Origin: Utricularia gibba | Lineage: Eukaryota; Plantae; Magnoliophyta | Reading direction: 5' to 3' | Assembly: GCA_002189035.1 (NCBI GenBank) | Contig: NEEC01000042.1 | Span: forward strand, 62,001-126,000 | DNA length: 64,000 nucleotides | Shown here: positions 41,844 to 64,000 of the stretch, one piece after another | Layout of the letters: each line of letters opens with the position of its first letter | Position numbering within the stretch: the stretch's first letter is position 1 | Translations under genes and position numbers: made by a program | Notes under the pieces: model-generated | The model's database searches: none | What the model was told of the DNA's origin: nothing | The model's input: only the letters and a program-made list of their open reading frames with translations

Positions 41844-42578
41844 CCTGGTTATATTCATATTGTGCATTTTGGTGAGGAGAGCAGATTCACCATAAGTTTT
41901 CTCAACTTCATTACCATCTCTTAGTTCCAATCTCTTTTCTGTAGATTGCAACTCAATCATGAACTCTCTAAATGTTGGCTCTGGTGTAACAGGATATTCA
42001 GGATACAGCTGATGGAGCTTTCCTTCAATAATGTCAAGGATTTTTCTTTCTGTCTCAAGTGCACATAACTTTGGCTCGAATCTTGCAGGTAGGCTCATGA
42101 TTGCCTTGCTAATCACCTTTTGATCCTCAAGTTTTTCCCCCAATCCTCGAATCTCCTTCACAAGCTTCGCAGTACGTTCATAATAGACTTGTATGGTTTC
42201 ATTGTCTAACATTTTGTTCCTCTCAAAGTCCTCCAGCTTGTTTTTGCATAATATCTCTCTGAGTTTGGCATCGCCTTCATAATGGGATTTGAGAGTATCC
42301 CATATTTCTTTTGCTGATTGACACTCTGCAATATCATCAAATAGATGTTCAGAGATGGCTTGATACAAGGCATCCATTGCTTCATCTTTTCTCTGTTGAA
42401 GATACTCAGCTTCCTCTTGCTGTTCTGATGTGGATTTGCTTGTTATTGTAATAGCCGGAATCTCCCTTTCAACAACATCCCAAATCTTTCTGACCCGAAG
42501 GTAGCTGCGCATCTTTTTGACCCAGCTTCCATACTCTGAACCATCAAATATTGGAGGTCCTCTACCAGATGCCATCAT
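41823..42578 (-). CDS. gag: Truncated copia Gag (251 aa from ATG; the ORF track starts at a GTG at 42584). N-terminal PPIFDG..Y..W...M..YL motif plus UBN2/Retrotran_gag_2-type core; no zinc knuckle; C-terminal ARDTVI* encoded by satellite
   Basis: The motifs GPPIFDGSEYGSWVKKMRSYL, SAKEIWDTLKSHYEG, FERNKMLDNETIQVYYER and GEKLEDQKVISKAIMSLPARF are recognisable copia Gag motifs. The ORF starts 106 bp downstream of the PBS. Expression is not shown. Confidence 0.88.
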   Translation of the reverse strand: MMASGRGPPIFDGSEYGSWVKKMRSYLRVRKIWDVVEREIPAITITSKSTSEQQEEAEYLQQRKDEAMDALYQAISEHLFDDIAECQSAKEIWDTLKSHYEGDAKLREILCKNKLEDFERNKMLDNETIQVYYERTAKLVKEIRGLGEKLEDQKVISKAIMSLPARFEPKLCALETERKILDIIEGKLHQLYPEYPVTPEPTFREFMIELQSTEKRLELRDGNEVEKTYGESALLTKMHNMNITRARDTVI

Positions 42579-42684
42579 AGCCACCGCTTGACAAGCTTTG
42601 GGTTGATACTTGGTAATCTACCAAGTAAAAAACGCTGAACGGTATATAAAATACTGAAACGAACACAGGTTTGAGAACCTTACT

Positions 42685-42696
42685 GCTCTGATACCA
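42685..42696 (-). other. Primer-binding site for initiator tRNA-Met, copy 1
   Basis: Minus-strand TGGTATCAGAGC immediately after the LTR-terminal CA; this is the canonical plant copia PBS. Confidence 0.93.
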
Positions 42697-43019
42697 TGTT
42701 GTTGCAAGAAAAATAGTCTTGGGAAGTAACAAAAAGGTAATGCTTATGAGATCACCTTGGATGAAAAACGACTCATGAACAATAAGAATGACCGAAAACC
42801 TAATTGACACGCATTTCTAGTAGGGCTTATATATACCAAATACCTAGGTTACCCAACAGTGGGCCACAATCATTGAAAACACACAAAAAGCCCAACAACT
42901 CGAATCCAACACTTCCATGCTCGAACCCAACACCTTTTTTTATCTGAAATATGACATTATGACACAAGTTTAGTTCTTCCAATCACCTTCAAGCTTTGGA
43001 TTGAGGCTGATCTCCAACA
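42697..43019 (-). repeat. 5' LTR, copy 1 (323 bp)
   Basis: The minus strand begins TGTTGGAGATC and ends TTGCAACAACA (5-bp terminal inverted repeat TGTTG/CAACA). It abuts the PBS and contains TATATATAA. It is 2 bp shorter than the other copies (AAATAGTCTT vs AAATAGAGTCTT). Confidence 0.9.
42827..42835 (-). promoter_or_regulatory. Putative LTR TATA box (also at 47216, 52551, 56324, 60097, 63876)
   Basis: Minus-strand TATATATAA about 130 bp before the LTR 3' end, the expected U3 position for an LTR Pol II promoter. Function is not demonstrated. Confidence 0.65.
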
Positions 43020-46000
43020 CTTGGTCCGGGCCCCTGATTCTTTATGGCTCATGAGGACAAAAGGATGCAAATCGATGAATACAATGATGCAATTGTTTAA
43101 ATTACGATATCACGTGCACCCTGATTTTTTCAACAACTTACTTTATACTTGAGGAGGTGGTCTTGGGGGGCAAGAGGAACCGGACAAAGGTCAGCTTATG
43201 CTTGGGTCGAAAGAAAGTTGTAGCCTGACAAAGAAAGTGATCTATTTATTAACGTTCGGTTTTCGGGGCTACCTACATGGTTTTTCAAGGAACCGCTTCT
43301 CGTTTTGTGGCGGCCAGTCTCGCTGGGAACTTGGTCCTTTACCCCGATTCTGTATGGCTCATGAGGTCAACCGAATGCAAATCGATTAAAAAAAATGATG
43401 CATTTGTTTAAATTGCGATATGACGTGCACCCCACATGATTTTTTTCAACAACTTACTTTATACTTGGGAGGCGGTCTTGGGGTGCACCTGGAACGGGAC
43501 AAAGGTAAGGTTTGGCTAGCGCCGAGAGTTAGTTGTAGCCCGACAAATAAAGTGATATTTATTATCGTTTGGTTTTCGGGGCTGCCTACATGGTTTTTCA
43601 AGGAACCGCTTCTCGTTTTGTGCGGCCAGTCTCGCTGGGAACTTGGTCCTTGACCCCGATTCTGTATGGCTCATGAGGTCAACCGGATGCAAATCGATTA
43701 AAAAAATGATGCATTTGTTTAAATTGCGATATCACGTGCACCCCACATGATTTTTTCAACAACTTACTTTATACTTGAGGAGGCGGTCTTGGGGCAGCTG
43801 GAACGGGACAAAGGTAAGGTTTGGCTTGCGCCGAGAGTTAGTTGTAGCCCGACAAATAAAGTGATAAATTTATATCGTTCGGTTTTCGGGGCTTCCTACA
43901 TGGTTTTTCAAGGAACCGCTTCTCGTTTTGTGGCGGCCAGTCTCGCTGGGAACTTGGTCCTTGACCCCGATTCTGTATGGCTCATGAGGTCAACCGGATG
44001 CAAATCGATTAAAAAAAGTGATGCATTTGTTTAAATTGCGATATCACGTGCACCCCACATGATTTTTTCAACAACTTACTTTATACTTGAGGAGGCGATC
44101 TTAGGGTGCACCTCGAACAGGACAAAGGTAAGGTTTGGCTTGCGCCGAGAGTTAGTTGTAGCCCGACAAATAAAGTGATGTATTTATTATCGTTCGGTTT
44201 TCGGGGGCTGCCTACATGGTTTTTCAAGGAACCGCTTCTCGTTTTGTGGCGGCCAGTCTCGCTGGGAACTTGGTCCTTGACCCCGATTCTGTATGGCTCA
44301 TGGGTCAACCGGATGCAAATCGAAGAAAAAAAATGATGCATTTGTTTAAATTACGATATCACGTGCACCCTACATGATTTTTTCGACAACTTACTTTATA
44401 CATGGGGAGGCGGTCTTGGGGGTACCTGGAAGCGGAAAATGGTCAGCTTAGGCTTGGGCCGATAGTAAGTTGTAGCCCGGCAAAGAAAGTGATGTATTTA
44501 TTATCGTTCGGTTTTTGGGGCTGCCTACATGGTTTTTCAAGGAACATCTTCTCTTTTTGTGGCGGCCGCTCTCGCTGGGAACTTGGTCCGGGCCCCTGAT
44601 TCTCTTTGGCTCATGAGGACAAAAGGATGCAAATCGATGAAACAATGATGCATTTGTTTCAATTACGATATCACGTGCACCCCACATGATTTTTTCAACA
44701 ACTTACTTTATACTTGAGGAGGTGGTCTTGGGGGCAAGAGGAACCAGACAACGGTCATATTAGGCTTGGGCCGAAAGTAAGTTGTAGCCCGGCAAAGAAA
44801 GTGATGTATTTATTAACGTTCGGTTTTCAGGGTTCCCTACATGGTTTTCCAAGGAAAAGCTTTTCGTTTTGTGGCGGCCGCTCTCGCTGGGCACTTGGTC
44901 CGGGCCCCTAATTCTTTATGGCTCATGAGGACAAAAGGATGCAAATCGATGAAAATAATGATGCATTTGTTTAAATTACGATGTCGCGTGCACCCCAAAT
45001 GATTTTTTTAACAACATACTTTATACATGAGGAGGCGGTCTTGGGGGCACTTGGAACCGGAAAAAGATCAGCTTAGGCTTGGGCCGAAAGTAAGTTGTAG
45101 CCCGGCAAAGAAAGTGATGTATTTATTAACGTTCGGTTTTCGGGGTTGCCTACATGGTTTTTCAAGGAACAGCTTCTCGTTTTGTGGTGGCCAGTCTCAC
45201 TAGGAACTTGGTCCGGGCCGCTGATTCTTTATGGCTCATGAGGACAAAAGGATGCAAATCGATGAATACAATGATGCATTTGTTTAAATTACGATATCAC
45301 GTGCACCCCACATCATTTTTTCAACAACGTACTTTATACTTGAAGAGGCGGTCTTGGGGTGCACCTAGAACGGGACAAAGGTCAGGTTGGGCTTTGCCAG
45401 AGAGTTAGTTGTAGCCCGGCAATGAAAGTGATGTATTTATTAACGTTTGGTTTTCGGGGTTGCCTACATGGTTTTTAAAGGAAAAGCTTCTCGTTTTGTG
45501 GCGGCTGCTCTCGCTGGGAACTTGGTCCGGGCCCCCGATTCTATATGGCTCATGAGGTCAACCAGATGCAAATCGATGAATATAATGATGCATTTGTTTA
45601 AATTACGATATCACGTGCACCCTACATCATTTTTTCAACAACTTACTTTATACTTGAGCAGGTGGTCTTGGGGGCAAGAGGAACAGGACAAAGGTCAGCA
45701 TAGGCTTTGGCCGAAAGTAAGTTGTAGCCCGGCAAAGAAAGTGATGTATGTATTAACGTTCGGTTTTCGGGGTTGCTTACATGGTTTTTCAAGGAACAGC
45801 TTCTCCTTTAGTGGCGGCCAGTCTCGCTAGGAACTTGGTCCGGGCCCCTGACTCTTTATGGCTCATGAGGAGAAAAGGATGCAAATCCATGAATACAATG
45901 ATGCATTTGTTTAAATTACGATATCACGTGCACCCTACATCATTTTTTCAACAACGTACTTTATACTTGAGGAGGTGGTCTTGGGGGGCAAGAGGAACCG

Positions 46001-46231
46001 GACAAAGGTCAGCTTAGGCTTGGGCCGAAAGTAAGTTGTAGCCCGGCAAAGAAAGTGATGTATTTATTAACGTTCGGTTTTCGGAAGCTGCCTAAATGCT
46101 TTTTGAAAGAACATCTTCTCGTTTTATGGCGGCCAGTCTCGCTGGGAACTTGGTCCTTGACCCTGGTTCTGTATGGCTCATGGGGTGATGAAAAAAAATG
46201 ATGCATTTGTTTAAATTACGGTATCACGTGC
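43020..46231 (+). repeat. Satellite block between element copies 1 and 2 (partial + 10 monomers + 31 bp)
   Basis: Satellite resumes at CTTGGTCCGGG directly after the LTR. Monomer starts fall at about 43087, 43398, 43708, 44021, 44336, 44647, 44961, 45274, 45588, 45901, then 46201. Confidence 0.95.
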
Positions 46232-46966
46232 CCTGGTTATATTCATATTGTGCATTTTGGTGAGGAGAGCAGATTCACCATAAGTTTTCTCAACTTCATT
46301 ACCATCTCTTAGTTCCAATCTCTTTTCTGTAGATTGCAACTCAATCATGAACTCTCTAAATGTTGGCTCTGGTGTAACAGGATATTCAGGATACAGCTGA
46401 TGGAGCTTTCCTTCAATAATGTCAAGGATTTTTCTTTCTGTCTCAAGTGCACATAACTTTGGCTCGAATCTTGCAGGTAGGCTCATGATTGCCTTGCTAA
46501 TCACCTTTTGATCCTCAAGTTTTTCCCCCAATCCTCGAATCTCCTTCACAAGCTTCGCAGTACGTTCATAATAGACTTGTATGGTTTCATTGTCTAACAT
46601 TTTGTTCCTCTCAAAGTCCTCCAGCTTGTTTTTGCATAATATCTCTCTGAGTTTGGCATCGCCTTCATAATGGGATTTGAGAGTATCCCATATTTCTTTT
46701 GCTGATTGACACTCTGCAATATCATCAAATAGATGTTCAGAGATGGCTTGATACAAGGCATCCATTGCTTCATCTTTTCTCTGTTGAAGATACTCAGCTT
46801 CCTCTTGCTGTTCTGATGTGGATTTGCTTGTTATTGTAATAGCCGGAATCTCCCTTTCAACAACATCCCAAATCTTTCTGACCCGAAGGTAGCTGCGCAT
46901 CTTTTTGACCCAGCTTCCATACTCTGAACCATCAAATATTGGAGGTCCTCTACCAGATGCCATCAT
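46211..46966 (-). CDS. gag: Truncated copia Gag, copy 2
   Basis: Translation identical to copy 1 in the ORF track. Confidence 0.88.
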   Translation of the reverse strand: MMASGRGPPIFDGSEYGSWVKKMRSYLRVRKIWDVVEREIPAITITSKSTSEQQEEAEYLQQRKDEAMDALYQAISEHLFDDIAECQSAKEIWDTLKSHYEGDAKLREILCKNKLEDFERNKMLDNETIQVYYERTAKLVKEIRGLGEKLEDQKVISKAIMSLPARFEPKLCALETERKILDIIEGKLHQLYPEYPVTPEPTFREFMIELQSTEKRLELRDGNEVEKTYGESALLTKMHNMNITRARDTVI

Positions 46967-47071
46967 AGCCACCGCTTGACAAGCTTTGGGTTGATACTTG
47001 GTAATCTACCAAGTAAAAAACGCTGAACGGTATAAAAATACTGAAACGAACACAGGTTTGAGAACCTTACT

Positions 47072-47083
47072 GCTCTGATACCA
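47072..47083 (-). other. PBS (tRNA-iMet), copy 2
   Basis: Plus-strand GCTCTGATACCA. Confidence 0.93.
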
Positions 47084-47408
47084 TGTTGTTGCAAGAAAAA
47101 TAGAGTCTTGGGAAGTAACAAAAAGGTAATGCTTATGAGATCACCTTGGATGAAAAACGACTCATGAACAATAAGAATGACCGAAAACCTAATTGACACG
47201 CATTTCTAGTAGGGCTTATATATACCAAATACCTAGGTTACCCAACAGTGGGCCACAATCATTGAAAACACACAAAAAGCCCAACAACTCGAATCCAACA
47301 CTTCCATGCTCGAACCCAACACCTTTTTTTATCTGAAATATGACATTATGACACAAGTTTAGTTCTTCCAATCACCTTCAAGCTTTGGATTGAGGCTGAT
47401 CTCCAACA
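47084..47408 (-). repeat. LTR, copy 2 (325 bp)
   Basis: Same termini as copy 1. Confidence 0.9.
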
Positions 47409-50400
47409 CTTGGTCCGGGCCCCTGATTCTTTATGGCTCATGAGGACAAAAGGATGCAAATCGATGAATACAATGATGCAATTGTTTAAATTACGATATC
47501 ACGTGCACCCTACATGATTTTTTCAACAACTTACTTTATACTTGAGGAGGTGGTCTTGGGGGCAAGAGGAACCGGACAAAGGTCAGCTTATGCTTGGGTC
47601 GAAAGTAAGTTTAGCCTGACAAAGAAAGTGATCTATTTATTAACGTTCGGTTTTCGGGGCTACCTACATGGTTTTTCAAGGAACCGCTTCTCGTTTTGTG
47701 GCGGCCAGTCTCGCTGGGAACTTGGTCCTTTACCCCGATTCTGTATGGCTCATGAGGTCAACCGAATGCAAATCGATTAAAAAAAATGATGCATTTGTTT
47801 AAATTGCGATATGACGTGCACCCCACATGATTTTTTTCAACAACTTACTTTATACTTGGGAGGCGGTCTTGGGGTGCACCTGGAACGGGACAAAGGTAAG
47901 GTTTGGCTAGCGCCGAGAGTTAGTTGTAGCCCGACAAATAAAGTGATAAATTTGATATCGTTCGGTTTTCAGGGGCTACCTACATGGTTTTTCAAGGAAC
48001 CGCTTCTCGTTTTGTGGCGGCCAGTCTCGCTGGGAACTTGGTCTTTGACCCCGATTCTGTATGGCTCATGAGGTCAACCGGATGCAAATCGATTAAAAAA
48101 AATGATGCATTTGTTTAAATTGCGGTATGACGTGCACCCCACATGATTTTTTTCAACAACTTACTTTATACTTCAGGAGGCGGTCTTGGGGTGCACCTGG
48201 AACGGGACAAAGGTCAGCTTAGGCTTGGGCAGAAAGTAAGTTGTAGCCCGCCAAAGAAAGTGATGTATTTATTATCGTTTGGTTTTCGGGGGCTGCCTAC
48301 ATGGTTTTTCAAGGAACCGCTTCTCGTTTTGTGGCGGCCAGTCTCGCTGGGAACTTGGTCCTTGACCCCGATTCTGTATGGCTCATGAGGTCAACCGGAT
48401 GCAAATCGATTAAAAAAATGATGCATTTGTTTAAATTGCGATATCACGTGCACCCCACCTGATTTTTTCAACAACTTACTTTATACTTGAGGAGGCGGTC
48501 TTGGGACAGCTGGAACGGACAAAGGTAAGGTTTGGCTTGCGCCGAGAGTTAGTTGTAGCCCGACAAATAAAGTGATAAATTTGATATCGTTCGGTTTTCG
48601 GGGGCTTCCTACATGGTTTTTCAAGGAACCGCTTCTCGTTTTGTGGCGGCCAGTCTCGCTGGGAACTTGGTCCTTGACCCCGATTCTGTATGGCTCATGA
48701 GGTCAACCGGATGCAAATCGATTAAAAAAAATGATGCATTTGTTTAAATTGCGATATGACGTGCACCCCACATGATTTTTTCAACAACTTACTTTATACT
48801 TCAGGAGGCGGTCTTGGGGCACCTGGAACGGGACAAAGGTCAGCTTAGGCTTGGGCAGAAAGTAAGTTGTAGCCCGCAAAGAAAGTGATGTATTTATTAT
48901 CGTTGGTTTTCGGGGGCTGCCTACATGGTTTTTCAAGGAACCGCTTCTCGTTTTGTGCGGCCAGTCTCGCTGGGAACTTGGTCCTTGACCCCGATTCTGT
49001 ATGGCTCATGAGGTCAACCGGATGCAAATCGATTAAAAAAAATGATGCATTTGTTTAAATTGCGATATCACGTGCACCCCACATGATTTTTTCAACAACT
49101 TACTTTATACTTGAGGAGGCGGTCTTGGGGTACAGCTGGAACGGACAAAGGTAAGGTTTGGCTTGCGCCGAGAGTTAGTTGTAGCCCGACAAATAAAGTG
49201 ATAAATTTATATCGTTCGGTTTTCGGGGGCTTCCTACATGGTTTTTCAAGGAACCGCTTCTCGTTTTGTGGCGGCCAGTCTCGCTGGGAACTTGGTCCTT
49301 GACCCCGATTCTGTATGGCTCATGAGGTCAACCGGATGCAAATCGATTAAAAAAATGATGCATTTGTTTAAATTGCGATATCACGTGCACCCCACATGAT
49401 TTTTTCAACAACTTACTTTATACTTGAGGAGGCGTCTTAGGGTGCACCTCGAACAGGACAAAGGTAAGGTTTGGCTTGCGCCGAGAGTTAGTTGTAGCCC
49501 GACAAATAAAGTGATGTATTTATTATCGTTCGGTTTTCGGGGGCTGCCTACATGGTTTTTCAAAGAACCGCTTCTCGTTTTGGCGGCCAGTCTCGCTGGG
49601 AACTTGGTCCTTGACCCCGATTCTGTATGGCTCATGGGTCAACCGGATGCAAATCGAAGAAAAAAAATGATGCATTTGTTTAAATTACGATATCACGTGC
49701 ACCCTACATGATTTTTTCGACAACTTACTTTATACATGGGGAGGCGGTCTTGGGGGTACCTGGAAGCGGAAAATGGTCAGCTTAGGCTTGGGCCGATAGT
49801 AAGTTGTAGCCCGGCAAGGAAAGTGATGTATTTATTATCGTTCGGTTTTTGGGGGCTGCCTACATGGTTTTTCAAGGAACATCTTCTCTTTTGTGGCGGC
49901 CGCTCTCGCTGGGAACTTGGTCCGGGCCCCTGATTCTCTTTGGCTCATGAGGACAAAAGGATGCAAATCGATGAATACAATGATGCATTTGTTTCAATTA
50001 CGATATCACGTGCACCCCACATGATTTTTTCAACAACTTACTTTATACTTGAGGAGGTGGTCTTGGGGGGCAAGAGGAACCAGACAACGGTCATATTAGG
50101 CTTGGGCCGAAAGTAAGTTGTAGCCCGGCAAAGAAAGTGATGTATTTATTAACGTTCGGTTTTCAGGGTTGCCTACATGGTTTTCCAAGGAAAAGCTTTT
50201 CGTTTTGTGGCGGCCGCTCTCGCTGGGCACTTGGTCCGGGCCCCTAATTCTTTATGGCTCATGAGGACAAAAGGATGCAAATCGATGAAAATAATGATGC
50301 ATTTGTTTAAATTACGATGTCGCGTGCACCCCAAATGATTTTTTAACAACATACTTTATACATGAGGAGGCGGTCTTGGGGGGCACTTGGAACCGGAAAA

Positions 50401-51565
50401 GATCAGCTTAGGCTTGGGCCGAAAGTAAGTTGTAGCCCGGCAAAGAAAGTGATGTATTTATTAACGTTCGGTTTTCGGGGTTGCCTACATGGTTTTTCAA
50501 GGAACAGCTTCTCGTTTTGTGGTGGCCAGTCTCACTAGGAACTTGGTCCGGGCCGCTGATTCTTTATGGCTCATGAGGACAAAAGGATGCAAATCGATGA
50601 ATACAATGATGCATTTGTTTAAATTACGATATCACGTGCACCCCACATCATTTTTTCAACAACGTACTTTATACTTGAAGAGGCGGTCTTGGGGTGCACC
50701 TAGAACGGGACAAAGGTCAGGTTGGGCTTTGCCAGAGAGTTAGTTGTAGCCCGGCAATGAAAGTGATGTATTTATTAACGTTTGGTTTTCGGGGTTGCCT
50801 ACATGGTTTTTCAAGGAAAAGCTTCTCGTTTTGTGGCGGCTGCTCTCGCTGGGAACTTGGTCCGGGCCCCCGATTCTATATGGCTCATGAGGTCAACCAG
50901 ATGCAAATCGATGAATATAATGATGCATTTGTTTAAATTACGATATCACGTGCACCCTACATCATTTTTTCAACAACTTACTTTATACTTGAGCAGGTGG
51001 TCTTGGGGGGCAAGAGGAACAGGACAAAGGTCAGCATAGGCTTTGGCCGAAAGTAAGTTGTAGCCCGGCAAAGAAAGTGATGTATGTATTAACGTTCGGT
51101 TTTCGGGGTTGCTTACATGGTTTTTCAAGGAACAGCTTCTCCTTTAGTGGCGGCCAGTCTCGCTAGGAACTTGGTCCGGGCCCCTGACTCTTTATGGCTC
51201 ATGAGGAGAAAAGGATGCAAATCCATGAATACAATGATGCATTTGTTTAAATTACGATATCACGTGCACCCTACATGATTTTTTCGACAACTTACTTTAT
51301 ACATGGGGAGGCGGTCTTGGGGGTACCTGGAACCGGAAAATGGTCAGCGTAGGCTTGGGCCGATAGTAAGTTGTAGCCCGCAAATAAAGTAATGTATTTA
51401 TTATCGTTCGGTTTTCGGAAGCTGCCTAAATGCTTTTTGAAAGAACATCTTCTCGTTTTATGGCGGCCAGTCTCGCTGGGAACTTGGTCCTTGACCCTGG
51501 TTCTGTATGGCTCATGGGGTGATGAAAAAAAATGATGCATTTGTTTAAATTACGGTATCACGTGC
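47409..51565 (+). repeat. Satellite block between element copies 2 and 3 (partial + 13 monomers + 31 bp)
   Basis: Same monomer landmarks; includes an internal duplicated dimer at about 48105-49357. Confidence 0.95.
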
Positions 51566-52300
51566 CCTGGTTATATTCATATTGTGCATTTTGGTGAGGA
51601 GAGCAGATTCACCATAAGTTTTCTCAACTTCATTACCATCTCTTAGTTCCAATCTCTTTTCTGTAGATTGCAACTCAATCATGAACTCTCTAAATGTTGG
51701 CTCTGGTGTAACAGGATATTCAGGATACAGCTGATGGAGCTTTCCTTCAATAATGTCAAGGATTTTTCTTTCTGTCTCAAGTGCACATAACTTTGGCTCG
51801 AATCTTGCAGGTAGGCTCATGATTGCCTTGCTAATCACCTTTTGATCCTCAAGTTTTTCCCCCAATCCTCGAATCTCCTTCACAAGCTTCGCAGTACGTT
51901 CATAATAGACTTGTATGGTTTCATTGTCTAACATTTTGTTCCTCTCAAAGTCCTCCAGCTTGTTTTTGCATAATATCTCTCTGAGTTTGGCATCGCCTTC
52001 ATAATGGGATTTGAGAGTATCCCATATTTCTTTTGCTGATTGACACTCTGCAATATCATCAAATAGATGTTCAGAGATGGCTTGATACAAGGCATCCATT
52101 GCTTCATCTTTTCTCTGTTGAAGATACTCAGCTTCCTCTTGCTGTTCTGATGTGGATTTGCTTGTTATTGTAATAGCCGGAATCTCCCTTTCAACAACAT
52201 CCCAAATCTTTCTGACCCGAAGGTAGCTGCGCATCTTTTTGACCCAGCTTCCATACTCTGAACCATCAAATATTGGAGGTCCTCTACCAGATGCCATCAT
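51545..52300 (-). CDS. gag: Truncated copia Gag, copy 3
   Basis: Translation identical to copy 1. Confidence 0.88.
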   Translation of the reverse strand: MMASGRGPPIFDGSEYGSWVKKMRSYLRVRKIWDVVEREIPAITITSKSTSEQQEEAEYLQQRKDEAMDALYQAISEHLFDDIAECQSAKEIWDTLKSHYEGDAKLREILCKNKLEDFERNKMLDNETIQVYYERTAKLVKEIRGLGEKLEDQKVISKAIMSLPARFEPKLCALETERKILDIIEGKLHQLYPEYPVTPEPTFREFMIELQSTEKRLELRDGNEVEKTYGESALLTKMHNMNITRARDTVI

Positions 52301-52406
52301 AGCCACCGCTTGACAAGCTTTGGGTTGATACTTGGTAATCTACCAAGTAAAAAACGCTGAACGGTATATAAAATACTGAAACGAACACAGGTTTGAGAAC
52401 CTTACT

Positions 52407-52418
52407 GCTCTGATACCA
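52407..52418 (-). other. PBS (tRNA-iMet), copy 3
   Basis: Plus-strand GCTCTGATACCA. Confidence 0.93.
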
Positions 52419-52743
52419 TGTTGTTGCAAGAAAAATAGAGTCTTGGGAAGTAACAAAAAGGTAATGCTTATGAGATCACCTTGGATGAAAAACGACTCAT
52501 GAACAATAAGAATGACCGAAAACCTAATTGACACGCATTTCTAGTAGGGCTTATATATACCAAATACCTAGGTTACCCAACAGTGGGCCACAATCATTGA
52601 AAACACACAAAAAGCCCAACAACTCGAATCCAACACTTCCATGCTCGAACCCAACACCTTTTTTTATCTGAAATATGACATTATGACACAAGTTTAGTTC
52701 TTCCAATCACCTTCAAGCTTTGGATTGAGGCTGATCTCCAACA
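52419..52743 (-). repeat. LTR, copy 3 (325 bp)
   Basis: Same termini as copy 1. Confidence 0.9.
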
Positions 52744-55338
52744 CTTGGTCCGGGCCCCTGATTCTTTATGGCTCATGAGGACAAAAGGATGCAAATCGAT
52801 GAATACAATGATGCAATTGTTTAAATTACGATATCACGTGCACCCTACATGATTTTTTCAACAACTTACTTTATACTTGAGGAGGTGGTCTTGGGGGCAA
52901 GAGGAACCGGACAAAGGTCAGCTTATGCTTGGGTCGAAAGTAAGTTGTAGCCTGACAAAGAAAGTGATCTATTTATTAACGTTCGGTTTTCGGGGCTACC
53001 TACATGGTTTTTCAAGGAACCGCTTCTCGTTTTGTGGCGGCCAGTCTCGCTGGGAACTTGGTCCTTTACCCCGATTCTGTATGGCTCATGAGGTCAACCG
53101 AATGCAAATCGATTAAAAAAAATGATGCATTTGTTTAAATTGCGATATGACGTGCACCCCACATGATTTTTTTCAACAACTTACTTTATACTTGGGGAGG
53201 CGGTCTTGGGGTGCACCTGGGACAAAGGTAAGGTTTGGCTAGCGCCGAGAGTTAGTTGTAGCCCGACAAATAAAGTGATAAATTTGATATCGTTCGGTTT
53301 TCAGGGGCTACCTACATGGTTTTTCAAGGAACCGCTTCTCGTTTTGTGGCGGCCAGTCTCGCTGGGAACTTGGTCTTTGACCCCGATTCTGTATGGCTCA
53401 TGAGGTCAACCGGATGCAAATCGATTAAAAAAAATGATGCATTTGTTTAAATTGCGGTATGACGTGCACCCCACATGATTTTTTCAACAACTTACTTTAT
53501 ACTTCAGGAGGCGGTCTTGGGGTGCACCTGGAACGGGACAAAGGTCAGCTTAGGCTTGGGCAGAAAGTAAGTTGTAGCCCGCCAAAGAAAGTGATGTATT
53601 TATTATCGTTTGGTTTTCGGGGGCTGCCTACATGGTTTTTCAAGGAACCGCTTCTCGTTTTGTGGCGGCCAGTCTCGCTGGGAACTTGGTCCTTGACCCC
53701 GATTCTGTATGGCTCATGAGGTCAACCGGATGCAAATCGATTAAAAAAAGTGATGCATTTGTTTAAATTGCGATATCACGTGCACCCCACATGATTTTTT
53801 CAACAACTTACTTTATACTTGAGGAGGCGATCTTAGGGTGCACCTCGAACAGGACAAAGGTAAGGTTTGGCTTGCGCCGAGAGTTAGTTGTAGCCCGACA
53901 AATAAAGTGATGTATTTATTATCGTTCGGTTTTCGGGGCTGCCTACATGGTTTTTCAAGGAACCGCTTCTCGTTTTGTGGCGGCCAGTCTCGCTGGGAAC
54001 TTGGTCCTTGACCCCGATTCTGTATGGCTCATGGGGTCAACCGGATGCAAATCGAAGAAAAAAAATGATGCATTTGTTTAAATTACGATATCACGTGCAC
54101 CCTACATGATTTTTTCGACAACTTACTTTATACATGGGAGGCGGTCTTGGGGGTACCTGGAAGCGGAAAATGGTCAGCTTAGGCTTGGGCCGATAGTAAG
54201 TTGTAGCCCGGCAAAGAAAGTGATGTATTTATTAACGTTCGGTTTTCGGGGTTGCCTACATGGTTTTCCAAGGAAAAGCTTTTCGTTTTGTGGTGGCTAG
54301 TCTCGCTGGGAACTTTGTCCTGGACCTCGATTCATTATGTCTTATGAGGTCAACCGGATGCAAATCGATGAAAAAAATTGATGCATTTGTTTAAATTACG
54401 ATATCACGTGCACCCTACATGATTTTTTCAACAACTTACTTTATACTTGAGGAGGTGGTCTTGGGGGGCAAGAGGAACCAGACAACGGTCATATTAGGCT
54501 TGGGCCGAAAGTAAGTTGTAGCCCGGCAAAGAAAGTGATGTATTTATTAACGTTCGGTTTTCAGGGTTGCCTACATGGTTTTCCAAGGAAAAGCTTTTCG
54601 TTTTGTGGCGGCCGCTCTCGCTGGGCACTTGGTCCGGGCCCCTAATTCTTTATGGCTCATGAGGACAAAAGGATGCAAATCGATGAAAATAATGATGCAT
54701 TTGTTTAAATTACGATGTCGCGTGCACCCCAAATGATTTTTTTAACAACATACTTTATACATGAGGAGGCGGTCTTGGGGGCACTTGGAACCGGAAAAAG
54801 ATCAGCTTAGGCTTGGGCCGAAAGTAAGTTGTAGCCCGGCAAAGAAAGTGATGTATTTATTATCGTTCGGTTTTTGGGGTTGCCTACATGGTTTTTCAAG
54901 GAACATCTTCTCGTTTTGTGGTGGCTAGTCTCGCTGGGAACTTGGTCCTTGACCCCGATTCTGTATGGCTCATGGGGTCAACCGGATGCAAATCGAAGAA
55001 AAAAAATGATGCATTTGTTTAAATTACGATATCACGTGCACCCTACATGATTTTTTCGACAACTTACTTTATACATGGGGAGGCGGTCTTGGGGGGTACC
55101 TGGAACCGGAAAATGGTCAGCGTAGGCTTGGGCCGATAGTAAGTTGTAGCCCGACAAATAAAGTAATGTATTTATTATCGTTCGGTTTTCGGAAGCTGCC
55201 TAAATGCTTTTTGAAAGAACATCTTCTCGTTTTATGGCGGCCAGTCTCGCTGGGAACTTGGTCCTTGACCCTGGTTCTGTATGGCTCATGGGTGATGAAA
55301 AAAAATGATGCATTTGTTTAAATTACGGTATCACGTGC
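52744..55338 (+). repeat. Satellite block between element copies 3 and 4 (partial + 8 monomers + 31 bp)
   Basis: Eight monomers of the right-hand subfamily in a fixed order. Confidence 0.95.
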
Positions 55339-56073
55339 CCTGGTTATATTCATATTGTGCATTTTGGTGAGGAGAGCAGATTCACCATAAGTTTTCTCAA
55401 CTTCATTACCATCTCTTAGTTCCAATCTCTTTTCTGTAGATTGCAACTCAATCATGAACTCTCTAAATGTTGGCTCTGGTGTAACAGGATATTCAGGATA
55501 CAGCTGATGGAGCTTTCCTTCAATAATGTCAAGGATTTTTCTTTCTGTCTCAAGTGCACATAACTTTGGCTCGAATCTTGCAGGTAGGCTCATGATTGCC
55601 TTGCTAATCACCTTTTGATCCTCAAGTTTTTCCCCCAATCCTCGAATCTCCTTCACAAGCTTCGCAGTACGTTCATAATAGACTTGTATGGTTTCATTGT
55701 CTAACATTTTGTTCCTCTCAAAGTCCTCCAGCTTGTTTTTGCATAATATCTCTCTGAGTTTGGCATCGCCTTCATAATGGGATTTGAGAGTATCCCATAT
55801 TTCTTTTGCTGATTGACACTCTGCAATATCATCAAATAGATGTTCAGAGATGGCTTGATACAAGGCATCCATTGCTTCATCTTTTCTCTGTTGAAGATAC
55901 TCAGCTTCCTCTTGCTGTTCTGATGTGGATTTGCTTGTTATTGTAATAGCCGGAATCTCCCTTTCAACAACATCCCAAATCTTTCTGACCCGAAGGTAGC
56001 TGCGCATCTTTTTGACCCAGCTTCCATACTCTGAACCATCAAATATTGGAGGTCCTCTACCAGATGCCATCAT
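55318..56073 (-). CDS. gag: Truncated copia Gag, copy 4
   Basis: Translation identical to copy 1. Confidence 0.88.
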   Translation of the reverse strand: MMASGRGPPIFDGSEYGSWVKKMRSYLRVRKIWDVVEREIPAITITSKSTSEQQEEAEYLQQRKDEAMDALYQAISEHLFDDIAECQSAKEIWDTLKSHYEGDAKLREILCKNKLEDFERNKMLDNETIQVYYERTAKLVKEIRGLGEKLEDQKVISKAIMSLPARFEPKLCALETERKILDIIEGKLHQLYPEYPVTPEPTFREFMIELQSTEKRLELRDGNEVEKTYGESALLTKMHNMNITRARDTVI

Positions 56074-56179
56074 AGCCACCGCTTGACAAGCTTTGGGTTG
56101 ATACTTGGTAATCTACCAAGTAAAAAACGCTGAACGGTATATAAAATACTGAAACGAACACAGGTTTGAGAACCTTACT

Positions 56180-56191
56180 GCTCTGATACCA
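56180..56191 (-). other. PBS (tRNA-iMet), copy 4
   Basis: Plus-strand GCTCTGATACCA. Confidence 0.93.
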
Positions 56192-56516
56192 TGTTGTTGC
56201 AAGAAAAATAGAGTCTTGGGAAGTAACAAAAAGGTAATGCTTATGAGATCACCTTGGATGAAAAACGACTCATGAACAATAAGAATGACCGAAAACCTAA
56301 TTGACACGCATTTCTAGTAGGGCTTATATATACCAAATACCTAGGTTACCCAACAGTGGGCCACAATCATTGAAAACACACAAAAAGCCCAACAACTCGA
56401 ATCCAACACTTCCATGCTCGAACCCAACACCTTTTTTTATCTGAAATATGACATTATGACACAAGTTTAGTTCTTCCAATCACCTTCAAGCTTTGGATTG
56501 AGGCTGATCTCCAACA
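56192..56516 (-). repeat. LTR, copy 4 (325 bp)
   Basis: Same termini as copy 1. Confidence 0.9.
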
Positions 56517-59111: not shown

Positions 59112-59846
59112 CCTGGTTATATTCATATTGTGCATTTTGGTGAGGAGAGCAGATTCACCATAAGTTTTCTCAACTTCATTACCATCTCTTAGTTCCAATC
59201 TCTTTTCTGTAGATTGCAACTCAATCATGAACTCTCTAAATGTTGGCTCTGGTGTAACAGGATATTCAGGATACAGCTGATGGAGCTTTCCTTCAATAAT
59301 GTCAAGGATTTTTCTTTCTGTCTCAAGTGCACATAACTTTGGCTCGAATCTTGCAGGTAGGCTCATGATTGCCTTGCTAATCACCTTTTGATCCTCAAGT
59401 TTTTCCCCCAATCCTCGAATCTCCTTCACAAGCTTCGCAGTACGTTCATAATAGACTTGTATGGTTTCATTGTCTAACATTTTGTTCCTCTCAAAGTCCT
59501 CCAGCTTGTTTTTGCATAATATCTCTCTGAGTTTGGCATCGCCTTCATAATGGGATTTGAGAGTATCCCATATTTCTTTTGCTGATTGACACTCTGCAAT
59601 ATCATCAAATAGATGTTCAGAGATGGCTTGATACAAGGCATCCATTGCTTCATCTTTTCTCTGTTGAAGATACTCAGCTTCCTCTTGCTGTTCTGATGTG
59701 GATTTGCTTGTTATTGTAATAGCCGGAATCTCCCTTTCAACAACATCCCAAATCTTTCTGACCCGAAGGTAGCTGCGCATCTTTTTGACCCAGCTTCCAT
59801 ACTCTGAACCATCAAATATTGGAGGTCCTCTACCAGATGCCATCAT
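59091..59846 (-). CDS. gag: Truncated copia Gag, copy 5
   Basis: Translation identical to copy 1. Confidence 0.88.
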   Translation of the reverse strand: MMASGRGPPIFDGSEYGSWVKKMRSYLRVRKIWDVVEREIPAITITSKSTSEQQEEAEYLQQRKDEAMDALYQAISEHLFDDIAECQSAKEIWDTLKSHYEGDAKLREILCKNKLEDFERNKMLDNETIQVYYERTAKLVKEIRGLGEKLEDQKVISKAIMSLPARFEPKLCALETERKILDIIEGKLHQLYPEYPVTPEPTFREFMIELQSTEKRLELRDGNEVEKTYGESALLTKMHNMNITRARDTVI

Positions 59847-59952
59847 AGCCACCGCTTGACAAGCTTTGGGTTGATACTTGGTAATCTACCAAGTAAAAAA
59901 CGCTGAACGGTATATAAAATACTGAAACGAACACAGGTTTGAGAACCTTACT

Positions 59953-59964
59953 GCTCTGATACCA
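59953..59964 (-). other. PBS (tRNA-iMet), copy 5
   Basis: Plus-strand GCTCTGATACCA. Confidence 0.93.
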
Positions 59965-60289
59965 TGTTGTTGCAAGAAAAATAGAGTCTTGGGAAGTAAC
60001 AAAAAGGTAATGCTTATGAGATCACCTTGGATGAAAAACGACTCATGAACAATAAGAATGACCGAAAACCTAATTGACACGCATTTCTAGTAGGGCTTAT
60101 ATATACCAAATACCTAGGTTACCCAACAGTGGGCCACAATCATTGAAAACACACAAAAAGCCCAACAACTCGAATCCAACACTTCCATGCTCGAACCCAA
60201 CACCTTTTTTTATCTGAAATATGACATTATGACACAAGTTTAGTTCTTCCAATCACCTTCAAGCTTTGGATTGAGGCTGATCTCCAACA
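59965..60289 (-). repeat. LTR, copy 5 (325 bp)
   Basis: Same termini as copy 1. Confidence 0.9.
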
Positions 60290-62890
60290 CTTGGTCCGGG
60301 CCCCTGATTCTTTATGGCTCATGAGGACAAAAGGATGCAAATCGATGAATACAATGATGCAATTGTTTAAATTACGATATCACGTGCACCCTACATGATT
60401 TTTTCAACAACTTACTTTATACTTGAGGAGGTGGTCTTGGGGGGCAAGAGGAACCGGACAAAGGTCAGCTTATGCTTGGGTCGAAAGTAAGTTGTAGCCT
60501 GACAAAGAAAGTGATCTATTTATTAACGTTCGGTTTTCGGGGCTACCTACATGGTTTTTCAAGGAACCGCTTCTCGTTTTGTGGCGGCCAGTCTCGCTGG
60601 GAACTTGGTCCTTTACCCCGATTCTGTATGGCTCATGAGGTCAACCGAATGCAAATCGATTAAAAAAAATGATGCATTTGTTTAAATTGCGATATGACGT
60701 GCACCCCACATGATTTTTTTCAACAACTTACTTTATACTTGGGGAGGCGGTCTTGGGGTGCACCTGGAACGGGACAAAGGTAAGGTTTGGCTAGCGCCGA
60801 GAGTTAGTTGTAGCCCGACAAATAAAGTGATAAATTTGATATCGTTCGGTTTTCAGGGGCTACCTACATGGTTTTTCAAGGAACCGCTTCTCGTTTTGTG
60901 GCGGCCAGTCTCGCTGGGAACTTGGTCTTTGACCCCGATTCTGTATGGCTCATGAGGTCAACCGGATGCAAATCGATTAAAAAAAATGATGCATTTGTTT
61001 AAATTGCGGTATGACGTGCACCCCACATGATTTTTTTCAACAACTTACTTTATACTTCAGGAGGCGGTCTTGGGGTGCACCTGGAACGGGACAAAGGTCA
61101 GCTTAGGCTTGGGCAGAAAGTAAGTTGTAGCCCGCCAAAGAAAGTGATGTATTTATTATCGTTTGGTTTTCGGGGGCTGCCTACATGGTTTTTCAAGGAA
61201 CCGCTTCTCGTTTTGTGGCGGCCAGTCTCGCTGGGAACTTGGTCCTTGACCCCGATTCTGTATGGCTCATGAGGTCAACCGGATGCAAATCGATTAAAAA
61301 AAGTGATGCATTTGTTTAAATTGCGATATCACGTGCACCCCACATGATTTTTTCAACAACTTACTTTATACTTGAGGAGGCGATCTTAGGGTGCACCTCG
61401 AACAGGACAAAGGTAAGGTTTGGCTTGCGCCGAGAGTTAGTTGTAGCCCGACAAATAAAGTGATGTATTTATTATCGTTCGGTTTTCGGGGGCTGCCTAC
61501 ATGGTTTTTCAAGGAACCGCTTCTCGTTTTGTGGCGGCCAGTCTCGCTGGGAACTTGGTCCTTGACCCCGATTCTGTATGGCTCATGGGGTCAACCGGAT
61601 GCAAATCGAAAAAAAAAATGATGCATTTGTTTAAATTACGATATCACGTGCACCCTACATGATTTTTTCGACAACTTACTTTATACATGGGGAGGCGGTC
61701 TTGGGGGGTACCTGGAAGCGGAAAATGGTCAGCTTAGGCTTGGGCCGATAGTAAGTTGTAGCCCGGCAAAGAAAGTGATGTATTTATTAACGTTCGGTTT
61801 TCGGGGTTGCCTACATGGTTTTCAAGGAAAAGCTTTTCGTTTTGTGGTGGCTAGTCTCGCTGGGAACTTTGTCCTGGACCTCGATTCTTATGTCTTATGA
61901 GGTCAACCGGATGCAAATCGATGAAAAAAATTGATGCATTTGTTTAAATTACGATATCACGTGCACCCTACATGATTTTTTCAACAACTTACTTTATACT
62001 TGAGGAGGTGGTCTTGGGGGCAAGAGGAACCAGACAACGGTCATATTAGGCTTGGGCCGAAAGTAAGTTGTAGCCCGGCAAAGAAAGTGATGTATTTATT
62101 AACGTTCGGTTTTCAGGGTTGCCTACATGGTTTTCCAAGGAAAAGCTTTTCGTTTTGTGGCGGCCGCTCTCGCTGGGCACTTGGTCCGGGCCCCTGATTC
62201 TTTATGGCTCATGAGGACAAAAGGATGCAAATCGATGAAAATAATGATGCATTTGTTTAAATTACGATGTCGCGTGCACCCCAAATGATTTTTTTAACAA
62301 CATACTTTATACATGAGGAGGCGGTCTTGGGGGCACTTGGAACCGGAAAAAGATCAGCTTAGGCTTGGGCCGAAAGTAAGTTGTAGCCCGGCAAAGAAAG
62401 TGATGTATTTATTATCGTTCGGTTTTTGGGGTTGCCTACATGGTTTTTCAAGGAACATCTTCTCGTTTTGTGGTGGCTAGTCTCGCTGGGAACTTGGTCC
62501 TTGACCCCGATTCTGTATGGCTCATGGGGTCAACCGGATGCAAATCGAAGAAAAAAAATGATGCATTTGTTTAAATTACGATATCACGTGCACCCTACAT
62601 GATTTTTTCGACAACTTACTTTATACATGGGGAGGCGGTCTTGGGGGTACCTGGAACCGGAAAATGGTCAGCGTAGGCTTGGGCCGATAGTAAGTTGTAG
62701 CCCGACAAATAAAGTAATGTATTTATTATCGTTCGGTTTTCGGAAGCTGCCTAAATGCTTTTTGAAAGAACATCTTCTCGTTTTATGGCGGCCAGTCTCG
62801 CTGGGAACTTGGTCCTTGACCCTGGTTCTGTATGGCTCATGGGGTGATGAAAAAAAATGATGCATTTGTTTAAATTACGGTATCACGTGC
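60290..62890 (+). repeat. Satellite block between element copies 5 and 6 (partial + 8 monomers + 31 bp)
   Basis: Near-identical to 56517-59111. Confidence 0.95.
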
Positions 62891-63625
62891 CCTGGTTATA
62901 TTCATATTGTGCATTTTGGTGAGGAGAGCAGATTCACCATAAGTTTTCTCAACTTCATTACCATCTCTTAGTTCCAATCTCTTTTCTGTAGATTGCAACT
63001 CAATCATGAACTCTCTAAATGTTGGCTCTGGTGTAACAGGATATTCAGGATACAGCTGATGGAGCTTTCCTTCAATAATGTCAAGGATTTTTCTTTCTGT
63101 CTCAAGTGCACATAACTTTGGCTCGAATCTTGCAGGTAGGCTCATGATTGCCTTGCTAATCACCTTTTGATCCTCAAGTTTTTCCCCCAATCCTCGAATC
63201 TCCTTCACAAGCTTCGCAGTACGTTCATAATAGACTTGTATGGTTTCATTGTCTAACATTTTGTTCCTCTCAAAGTCCTCCAGCTTGTTTTTGCATAATA
63301 TCTCTCTGAGTTTGGCATCGCCTTCATAATGGGATTTGAGAGTATCCCATATTTCTTTTGCTGATTGACACTCTGCAATATCATCAAATAGATGTTCAGA
63401 GATGGCTTGATACAAGGCATCCATTGCTTCATCTTTTCTCTGTTGAAGATACTCAGCTTCCTCTTGCTGTTCTGATGTGGATTTGCTTGTTATTGTAATA
63501 GCCGGAATCTCCCTTTCAACAACATCCCAAATCTTTCTGACCCGAAGGTAGCTGCGCATCTTTTTGACCCAGCTTCCATACTCTGAACCATCAAATATTG
63601 GAGGTCCTCTACCAGATGCCATCAT
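62870..63625 (-). CDS. gag: Truncated copia Gag, copy 6
   Basis: Translation identical to copy 1. Confidence 0.88.
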   Translation of the reverse strand: MMASGRGPPIFDGSEYGSWVKKMRSYLRVRKIWDVVEREIPAITITSKSTSEQQEEAEYLQQRKDEAMDALYQAISEHLFDDIAECQSAKEIWDTLKSHYEGDAKLREILCKNKLEDFERNKMLDNETIQVYYERTAKLVKEIRGLGEKLEDQKVISKAIMSLPARFEPKLCALETERKILDIIEGKLHQLYPEYPVTPEPTFREFMIELQSTEKRLELRDGNEVEKTYGESALLTKMHNMNITRARDTVI

Positions 63626-63731
63626 AGCCACCGCTTGACAAGCTTTGGGTTGATACTTGGTAATCTACCAAGTAAAAAACGCTGAACGGTATATAAAATA
63701 CTGAAACGAACACAGGTTTGAGAACCTTACT

Positions 63732-63743
63732 GCTCTGATACCA
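63732..63743 (-). other. PBS (tRNA-iMet), copy 6
   Basis: Plus-strand GCTCTGATACCA. Confidence 0.93.
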
Positions 63744-64000
63744 TGTTGTTGCAAGAAAAATAGAGTCTTGGGAAGTAACAAAAAGGTAATGCTTATGAGA
63801 TCACCTTGGATGAAAAACGACTCATGAACAATAAGAATGACCGAAAACCTAATTGACACGCATTTCTAGTAGGGCTTATATATACCAAATACCTAGGTTA
63901 CCCAACAGTGGGCCACAATCATTGAAAACACACAAAAAGCCCAACAACTCGAATCCAACACTTCCATGCTCGAACCCAACACCTTTTTTTATCTGAAATA
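63744..64000 (-). repeat. LTR, copy 6 (partial, window edge)
   Basis: The 3' end of the LTR (plus strand TGTTGTTGCAAG) is at 63744; the sequence matches the other copies to the window end. Confidence 0.9.

Follow-up and report, generated by a model that had tools for sequence, protein, structure and literature searches.

A truncated Ty1/copia insertion in a 313-bp satellite was very probably co-amplified passively with the satellite monomers flanking it, by unequal exchange or conversion, and its copies now form part of a chimeric unit of about 3.77 kb in the window (the whole 64-kb stretch of DNA analysed here). We favour a single origin followed by co-amplification because all copies of the inserted fragment, hereafter cassettes, have identical joints and share a private 15-bp deletion, because one of their ends is an LTR terminus and the other a truncation, and because the monomers at the unit boundaries are hybrids.

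The 313-bp satellite was detected by TRF as one array across 1-62845, and TRF and GC skew indicated that the whole window is a single array of 313-314-bp monomers in one orientation, the monomer being itself a diverged dimer of ~157 bp. Neither conserved 17-20-mers of the monomer nor a 314 bp/157 bp satellite gave a useful match in the full-text literature, and a conserved satellite 32-mer and a junction 30-mer had 0 matches in metagenome scans. Silene latifolia X43.1, also 313 bp long, was rejected as the identity of the satellite, its published probe 12H5 being unmatched in the window with up to 3 mismatches. BLAST of one monomer against the window left six non-satellite blocks of ~1.18 kb each; the block ends at 43018, 47407, 52742, 56515 and 60288 were extended by 1 for the terminal base of the LTR (to 43019, 47408, 52743, 56516 and 60289), giving the following cassettes, all placed by monomer BLAST and alignment:

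41844..43019, minus strand: cassette copy 1 (LTR-PBS-5'UTR-gag codons 1-245)
46232..47408, minus strand: cassette copy 2
51566..52743, minus strand: cassette copy 3, the reference copy for anatomy
55339..56516, minus strand: cassette copy 4
59112..60289, minus strand: cassette copy 5
62891..64000, minus strand: cassette copy 6, cut inside the LTR by the window end

The cassettes are 1,176-1,178 bp long, and aligning the six gives 0 substitutions, with indels at three columns that lie in the 5' UTR and LTR and outside the ORF (copy 2 has one T, copy 1 has AG). This agrees with the preliminary description of the stretch, which had reported six near-identical 1.18-kb copia 5' fragments (LTR-PBS-gag) on the minus strand. 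All copies have the same left joint (...CACGTGC/CCTGGTT, monomer position 29) and the same right joint (...CTCCAACA/CTTGGTCC, monomer position 246), so placed in the phase used here and earlier given as positions 31 and ~248, and the cassette replaces satellite positions 30-245 of one monomer. In every copy, the monomer adjoining the cassette on the left is missing ~15 bp close to its end, a common deletion first put at 16 bp. Satellite sequence is identical for 40 bp on each side in 6/6 copies, and identity between copies reaches further, to 160-330 bp on the left side and some 100-1000 bp on the right side. Junctions that differ between copies, which would have spoken against the amplification of one insertion, were looked for, and both joints and flanks proved identical in the six cassettes. 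The observed array of cassettes cannot be attributed to chance.

Units were delimited by monomer-HMM segmentation of the array, after which the full monomers (n = 180) were compared all-against-all, and differences between units were taken from pairwise global alignment. Consecutive cassettes (c1-c6 for the six copies) are separated by 10, 13, 8, 8 and 8 full monomers, the same spacing as first described. With letters for monomer types and primes for variants, the order is [.. Z ?0 Y Z H'] c1 [A B' X D E' F G' Y Z H'] c2 [A B C X C' X D E' F G' Y Z H] c3 [A B C D E F G H] c4, followed by c5 and c6, the last three units being alike. The units and their hybrid monomers are as follows:

40715..41843, plus strand: leftmost partial unit, with the second half of ?0, then Y0, Z0, H'0 and 29 bp of the next monomer, recognised by homology to the tails of units 1 and 2
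41844..46231, plus strand: edge unit 1, cassette + A B' X D E' F G' Y Z H', 10 monomers, 4388 bp
46232..51565, plus strand: edge unit 2, cassette + A B C X C' X D E' F G' Y Z H, 13 monomers, 5334 bp
51566..55338, plus strand, and again at 55339-59111 and 59112-62890: 8-monomer unit (cassette + A-H), 3773 bp
50299..50610, plus strand, and 44963-45275: hybrid G', its first ~165 bp equal to G and its second half to ?0
55011..55298, plus strand, and 51239-51527, 58784-59073 and 62563-62852: hybrid H, positions 38-168 unique and the rest equal to H'

Within the window the chimeric array thus comprises three full 8-monomer units and two variant units. The three full units, 3773, 3773 and 3779 bp long, differ from one another at 0-2 substituted sites and by 8-20 indels of one base each; many of these indels fall in G, T or A runs and look like long-read consensus noise. 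Monomers A-H within one unit are 85-95.5% alike, and units 3-5 are accordingly far closer to each other than are the monomers inside them, as in a higher-order repeat, which upholds the ~3.77-kb chimeric repeat of the preliminary description. Edge unit 2 has a local C-X duplication inside it. On the left, Y0, Z0 and H'0 match their counterparts Y1, Z1 and H'1 at 100% identity, and the true left edge of the repeated domain lies inside ?0 (40576-40889), near 40715 and ~1.1 kb to the left of the start reported earlier.

The boundaries of the units carry sharp sequence switches. The second half of G' has 0 mismatches in 147 bp against ?0, which lies three monomers to the left of the first cassette, and differs from the second half of G at 19 sites; its first half has 0 substitutions against G and 13-15 differing sites against ?0. 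H and H' differ by 18 substitutions, all in positions 38-168, and are identical from there onward to the cassette, the 15-bp deletion included, while E and E' differ at 26 sites, in their second halves only. Switches of this kind in G', H and E/E' are the traces expected from unequal homologous exchange or conversion between misaligned monomers. Judged from these alignments, G' appears to be a joint of unequal exchange and H the joint that defines the 8-monomer unit. No near-identical donor was found in the window for the second halves of E and G or for the first part of H, which led us to reject simple Y-Z deletions as models of how the 8-monomer unit arose. The B'/X/E' differences between units 1 and 2 and units 3-5 are unexplained by one simple series of exchanges.

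A burst of the 3.77-kb unit by replication, either as an eccDNA rolling circle with re-integration or through break-induced or template-switching replication, would also leave units 3-5 identical save for probable sequencing indels, and a circle closed between two monomers would yield the same hybrid H. We consider it unlikely, since the three unit lengths and the two hybrid joints (G' and H) require several separate exchanges. For the 8-monomer burst taken by itself, replication and crossover are indistinguishable from sequence.

Comparison with the remainder of the array placed the cassettes in a wider setting. The best identity of monomers A-H to the 127 upstream monomers is at most 94.8%, and A-H are a subfamily of their own; Y, Z and ?0 are 98-99% identical to monomers among the same 127. 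As A-H are unlike the upstream monomers and Y, Z and ?0 are like them, the cassette sits at the border of two satellite sub-domains, a position that fits a truncating deletion which took satellite along with element sequence. The upstream array has local higher-order structure of its own (e.g. a 5-monomer period at 19.2-25.4 kb), so the same machinery is active along the whole array.

Eleven runs, from seven studies, contain at least part of the stretch, and we compared the region 51400-52900 with contigs of four of them from four studies (X2, X5, X6 and X7). In X2, a short-read run of 2013, a contig of 139 nt covers 51526-51664, 40 nt being from the satellite and 99 nt from gag, with 0 differences and a k-mer depth of 326, and contigs over the H-specific flank with the private deletion have depths of 318-332. 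The contig of the undeleted parent form, which differs at 51607 and 51634, has a depth of 253, and contigs of the gag body have depths of 386-534, roughly the cassette and parent forms summed. In X2 the LTR end is joined to at least three different flanks, so the parent family is multi-copy there. Given a bridging depth of 326 against 253 for the parent, the satellite-gag joint is real and multi-copy, and in relative depth it is at least as abundant in X2 as the whole parent family. Satellite bins in the same run reach depths of 128,000-235,000, which relative to the joint amounts to about one cassette per 400-720 monomers genome-wide.

These reads bear on the possibility that one or a few real cassettes were multiplied by the assembler. 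The differences between units are indeed homopolymer-type indels, typical of an unpolished long-read consensus, and the assembly has T at 52540 in all six copies where every contig aligned there, X2 included, has C, a conflict that is either an assembly error or a fixed genotype difference. Such an artefact is nonetheless improbable: the cassettes occur in at least four contexts (H'-c-A B', H'-c-A B C X, Z H-c and G H-c), beyond simple over-expansion; the X2 junction contig is deeper than the dispersed parent family, with its three or more flanks, at the same place; and contig sets of only 14-95 Mb include 84-87% of the words in the stretch, which is what a repeat would give. The 8-monomer units differ almost only by 1-bp indels and an assembler could have miscounted identical units, so the number of identical 3.77-kb units is that given by the assembly.

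The other three runs differ from X2. X5 (labelled a plant metagenome), X6 and X7 have only parent letters at the cassette-diagnostic positions 51607 and 51634, apart from a minor signal in X6, where the window's letter at 51607 accounts for 12/727 of depth. Among the contigs of these three runs, which drop rare variants, none bridging the satellite-gag joint was listed. Two of the three parent-form runs carry the same species label and the third is the plant metagenome. The proportion of satellite to copia family in X5 is similar to that in X2; in X7 the copia family is present and the satellite has zero depth. The cassette had been called a fixed subunit of the satellite repeat, a description that the parent form at both diagnostic sites in three other runs does not bear out; for contigs that drop rare variants, the pattern suggests that the expansion is not common to all samples and is a polymorphism.

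The anatomy of the cassette was resolved in copy 3:

52419..52743, minus strand: LTR, 325 bp, TGTTGG...AACA, from sequence and from the points where contigs of other runs diverge
52407..52418, minus strand: putative primer-binding site TGGTATCAGAGC, directly after the LTR, from its position in the sequence
51545..52300, minus strand: chimeric ORF of 251 codons (245 of gag and 6 of satellite, then a stop), identical in six copies

Contigs of other runs diverge into varied flanks at 52418-52419 and at 52744-52746, which marks both ends of the LTR. The 325-bp LTR has the TG...CA termini of Ty1/copia and a TATA-like TATATATAAG at LTR position 185 (window 52559). The site TGGTATCAGAGC is presumably the primer-binding site usual in plant copia elements, which pairs with initiator tRNA-Met at the 3' end of the tRNA. 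A leader of 107 nt separates it from the ORF, which begins at 52300 and whose six last codons and stop (51545-51565) are supplied by the satellite. The gag part matches Pfam PF14223 Retrotran_gag_2 (E = 2.1e-27, 96 bits against a cut-off of 27, profile positions 1-153 of 172) and, below the family cut-off, DUF4219 (E = 6e-5); among Atlas clusters the nearest are without exception plant copia gag, and with the Retrotran_gag_2 match they identify it as copia-type. These gag relatives point to a flowering plant as the source of the DNA. No exact protein is on record for the chimeric 251-aa ORF, and the 245-aa gag had no homologue at E <= 1e-10 among proteins of similar length, a search outside which full polyproteins fall. 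An Rfam scan of one unit found no family.

Gag stops at codon 245 and is followed by satellite, for which reason the cassette is best regarded as a fragment of a Ty1/copia element; the pol region (PR-INT-RT-RH), the polypurine tract (PPT) and the 3' LTR of a complete element are all absent from it, and a 5-bp target-site duplication (TSD) would have been lost with one of its ends. TR-GAG elements are non-autonomous LTR elements that encode only gag, and two neighbouring cassettes read head to tail resemble them, as LTR-PBS-gag-(satellite)-LTR. They differ from a TR-GAG-like mobile pseudo-element at the PPT, since the downstream LTR is preceded by satellite (...GGCCCGGACCAAG) and by no polypurine tract; no TSD is recognisable at a stub with one end gone, and no dispersed copies are known. 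Mobilisation of the cassette is unlikely because of this missing tract. We think it very unlikely that the head-to-tail layout is more than a passive by-product and that the LTR promoter (TATA at LTR position 185) drives a gag-satellite read-through RNA that feeds siRNA silencing or chromatin marking of the array, or that is packaged and reverse transcribed in trans by a still-active parent family; if trans packaging did occur, satellite would be seeded at new loci, a route for satellites into LTR elements and for their spread. None of the runs listed with the stretch is recorded as an RNA run, which is no proof of silence.

The two ends of the cassette are of different kinds. The right end is an integration end, because the joint sets the exact 5' terminus of the LTR (TG) against satellite position 246, and because the LTR of the family leaves at the same base into several unrelated flanks in other runs. 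The left joint lies inside gag, against satellite position 29, and past 51569-51571 the parent form continues ...TTGCACCTGAG in three runs, which makes the cassette a truncated member of a dispersed family. The motif TGCACC is present both in the satellite and in the parent gag, within 3 nt of the truncation joint. A clean microhomology product was rejected, as the joint is without three bases that such a product would have, and the motif offers a suggestion only that microhomology played a role. The six cassettes must descend from a single event, given that a stub without pol, PPT and 3' LTR cannot transpose and that joints and flanks are identical. Independent insertions of a target-specific, pre-truncated element would account for the shared satellite position and nothing more, and are barely conceivable for a stub that cannot integrate, whose left end is not an element terminus and whose copies share 160-330 bp of left flank, about 100-1000 bp of right flank and the private deletion.

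For the co-amplification of one truncated insertion, we infer the following order of events. A young Ty1/copia element would have integrated into one 313-bp monomer, where satellite position 246 still adjoins the 5' LTR end. Everything from gag codon 246 onward, the 3' LTR included, may then have been lost in an illegitimate deletion that extended into the array and joined gag to position 29 of a monomer from a different satellite sub-domain. The leftover 1.18-kb stub would have had no means of self-movement, and hence would have multiplied passively. Unequal homologous exchange and/or gene conversion between the monomers flanking it would have produced a cassette with eight monomers, sealed by H, and this tandem unit would subsequently have been amplified. 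Further exchanges with the neighbouring array could have given the two edge units, which have 10 and 13 monomers and in which G' is the seal. The preliminary description had likewise proposed one truncated insertion amplified by satellite homogenisation, and the joints, the private deletion, the hybrid monomers and the junction depth in X2 all speak for it.

The array is probably very young. There are 0 substitutions in ~7 kb of cassette sequence, most gag k-mers are common with the dispersed copies, and the substitution rate often assumed for plants is 0.7-1.3e-8 per site per year; we infer either an age of a few tens of thousands of years or homogenisation that is continuing. An intact gag-satellite ORF is expected at such a young age, so it is no evidence of selection and implies no function.

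Comparable processes are known from other genomes. In Arabidopsis CEN180, Naish et al. 2021 (bioRxiv 10.1101/2021.05.30.446350) described five post-integration duplications of ATHILA elements or solo LTRs and ascribed them to the mechanism that makes higher-order repeats. There, as here, LTR-retrotransposon sequence was copied with a satellite array after integration. However, the ATHILA cases involve Ty3/gypsy elements or solo LTRs with duplicates 8.9-538 kb apart, whereas in our array a stub of copia LTR-PBS-gag recurs regularly within a head-to-tail unit of 3.77 kb, of which the window has at least 3-6 repeats with the joints preserved. In maize, the tandem repeats CRM1TR and CRM4TR derive from the LTR and UTR of CRM elements; these repeats, 1-4 Myr old, were begun by illegitimate recombination and enlarged by gene conversion (Sharma, Wolfgruber & Presting 2013, PMC3648361). 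In our case, too, an LTR element has contributed its 5' part to a tandem repeat, but CRM1TR/CRM4TR are retrotransposon sequence throughout, in contrast to a chimera of a TE stub and eight satellite monomers with zero divergence, in which a pre-existing satellite provides the homology for exchange. Tandems of TEs in Drosophila are polymorphic and sometimes expand, with ~16 copies of hobo in one line (McGurk & Barbash 2018, PMC5932611). These share with our array the rise and expansion of a TE-containing tandem; they start from double insertions of whole elements, unlike the one truncated insertion that rides on satellite recombination here.

The preliminary description spoke of a new repeat family caught in the act of forming. 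As a picture of this array the phrase is fair; the status of a family is not borne out, and the phenomenon has precedents. The case leaves knowledge of the mechanism unchanged and is a clean, very young example that combines features seen earlier. In it an undiverged copia stub recurs regularly within a short chimeric unit with all joints preserved, which makes it an unusually readable record of a transposon fragment becoming satellite DNA. The cassette offers a handle of unique sequence (for PCR, FISH and read mapping) inside an otherwise unmappable array, and the structure, which some samples of the species appear to have and others to lack, may serve, for example through its copy number in different accessions or pedigrees, as a natural marker for the rate of satellite turnover and the size of its units.

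Two satellite sub-domains meet, within window positions 40264-43400, at the cassette, the 1.18-kb minus-strand copia stub. The monomers on its left are of types shared through homogenisation with the 40 kb upstream (98-100% identity); to its right lie monomers A-H, the eight types that make up the 3.77-kb unit together with the cassette, for which the best upstream match reached at most 94.8%. The part of the array without cassettes includes stretches of a regular higher-order repeat, in which 87% of lag-5 monomer pairs have at least 99% identity, and throughout the rest of the upstream array the same approximately 10 monomer types return at 99-100% identity in irregular order. The regular stretches and the individual irregular monomers are as follows:

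19203-25394, and also 38696-39950: regular 5-monomer higher-order repeat (approximately 1.57 kb), in the part of the array without cassettes
3139-3389: 250-bp deletion variant of the monomer (TRF also gives a 250-bp period at 2950-3450)
13974-14035: rearranged 62-bp stretch contained in a monomer
16917-17091: partial monomer

Assembly and short reads disagreed at window position 52540, where all six assembled cassettes carry T and every short-read contig from the four runs carries C, including those of the run with the satellite-gag joint. This mismatch reflects either a systematic consensus error or a genotype difference fixed across the array. In run X7, which bears the same species label, the copia family was present at a depth of 300-5000, and depth over the 313-bp satellite (51400-51552 and 52777-52900) was zero at 95% likeness or above. 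Run X7 may represent a lineage lacking this 313-bp satellite variant, or the absence may be a library or filter effect.

Within run X2, just two substitutions (51607 and 51634) separated the cassette from its parent family, the dispersed and undeleted copia form. Both lie less than 70 bp from the truncation joint (51565|51566 in reference copy 3), where small indels are present. These substitutions and indels may simply be variants of the progenitor, or they may record error-prone repair at the site of the deletion.
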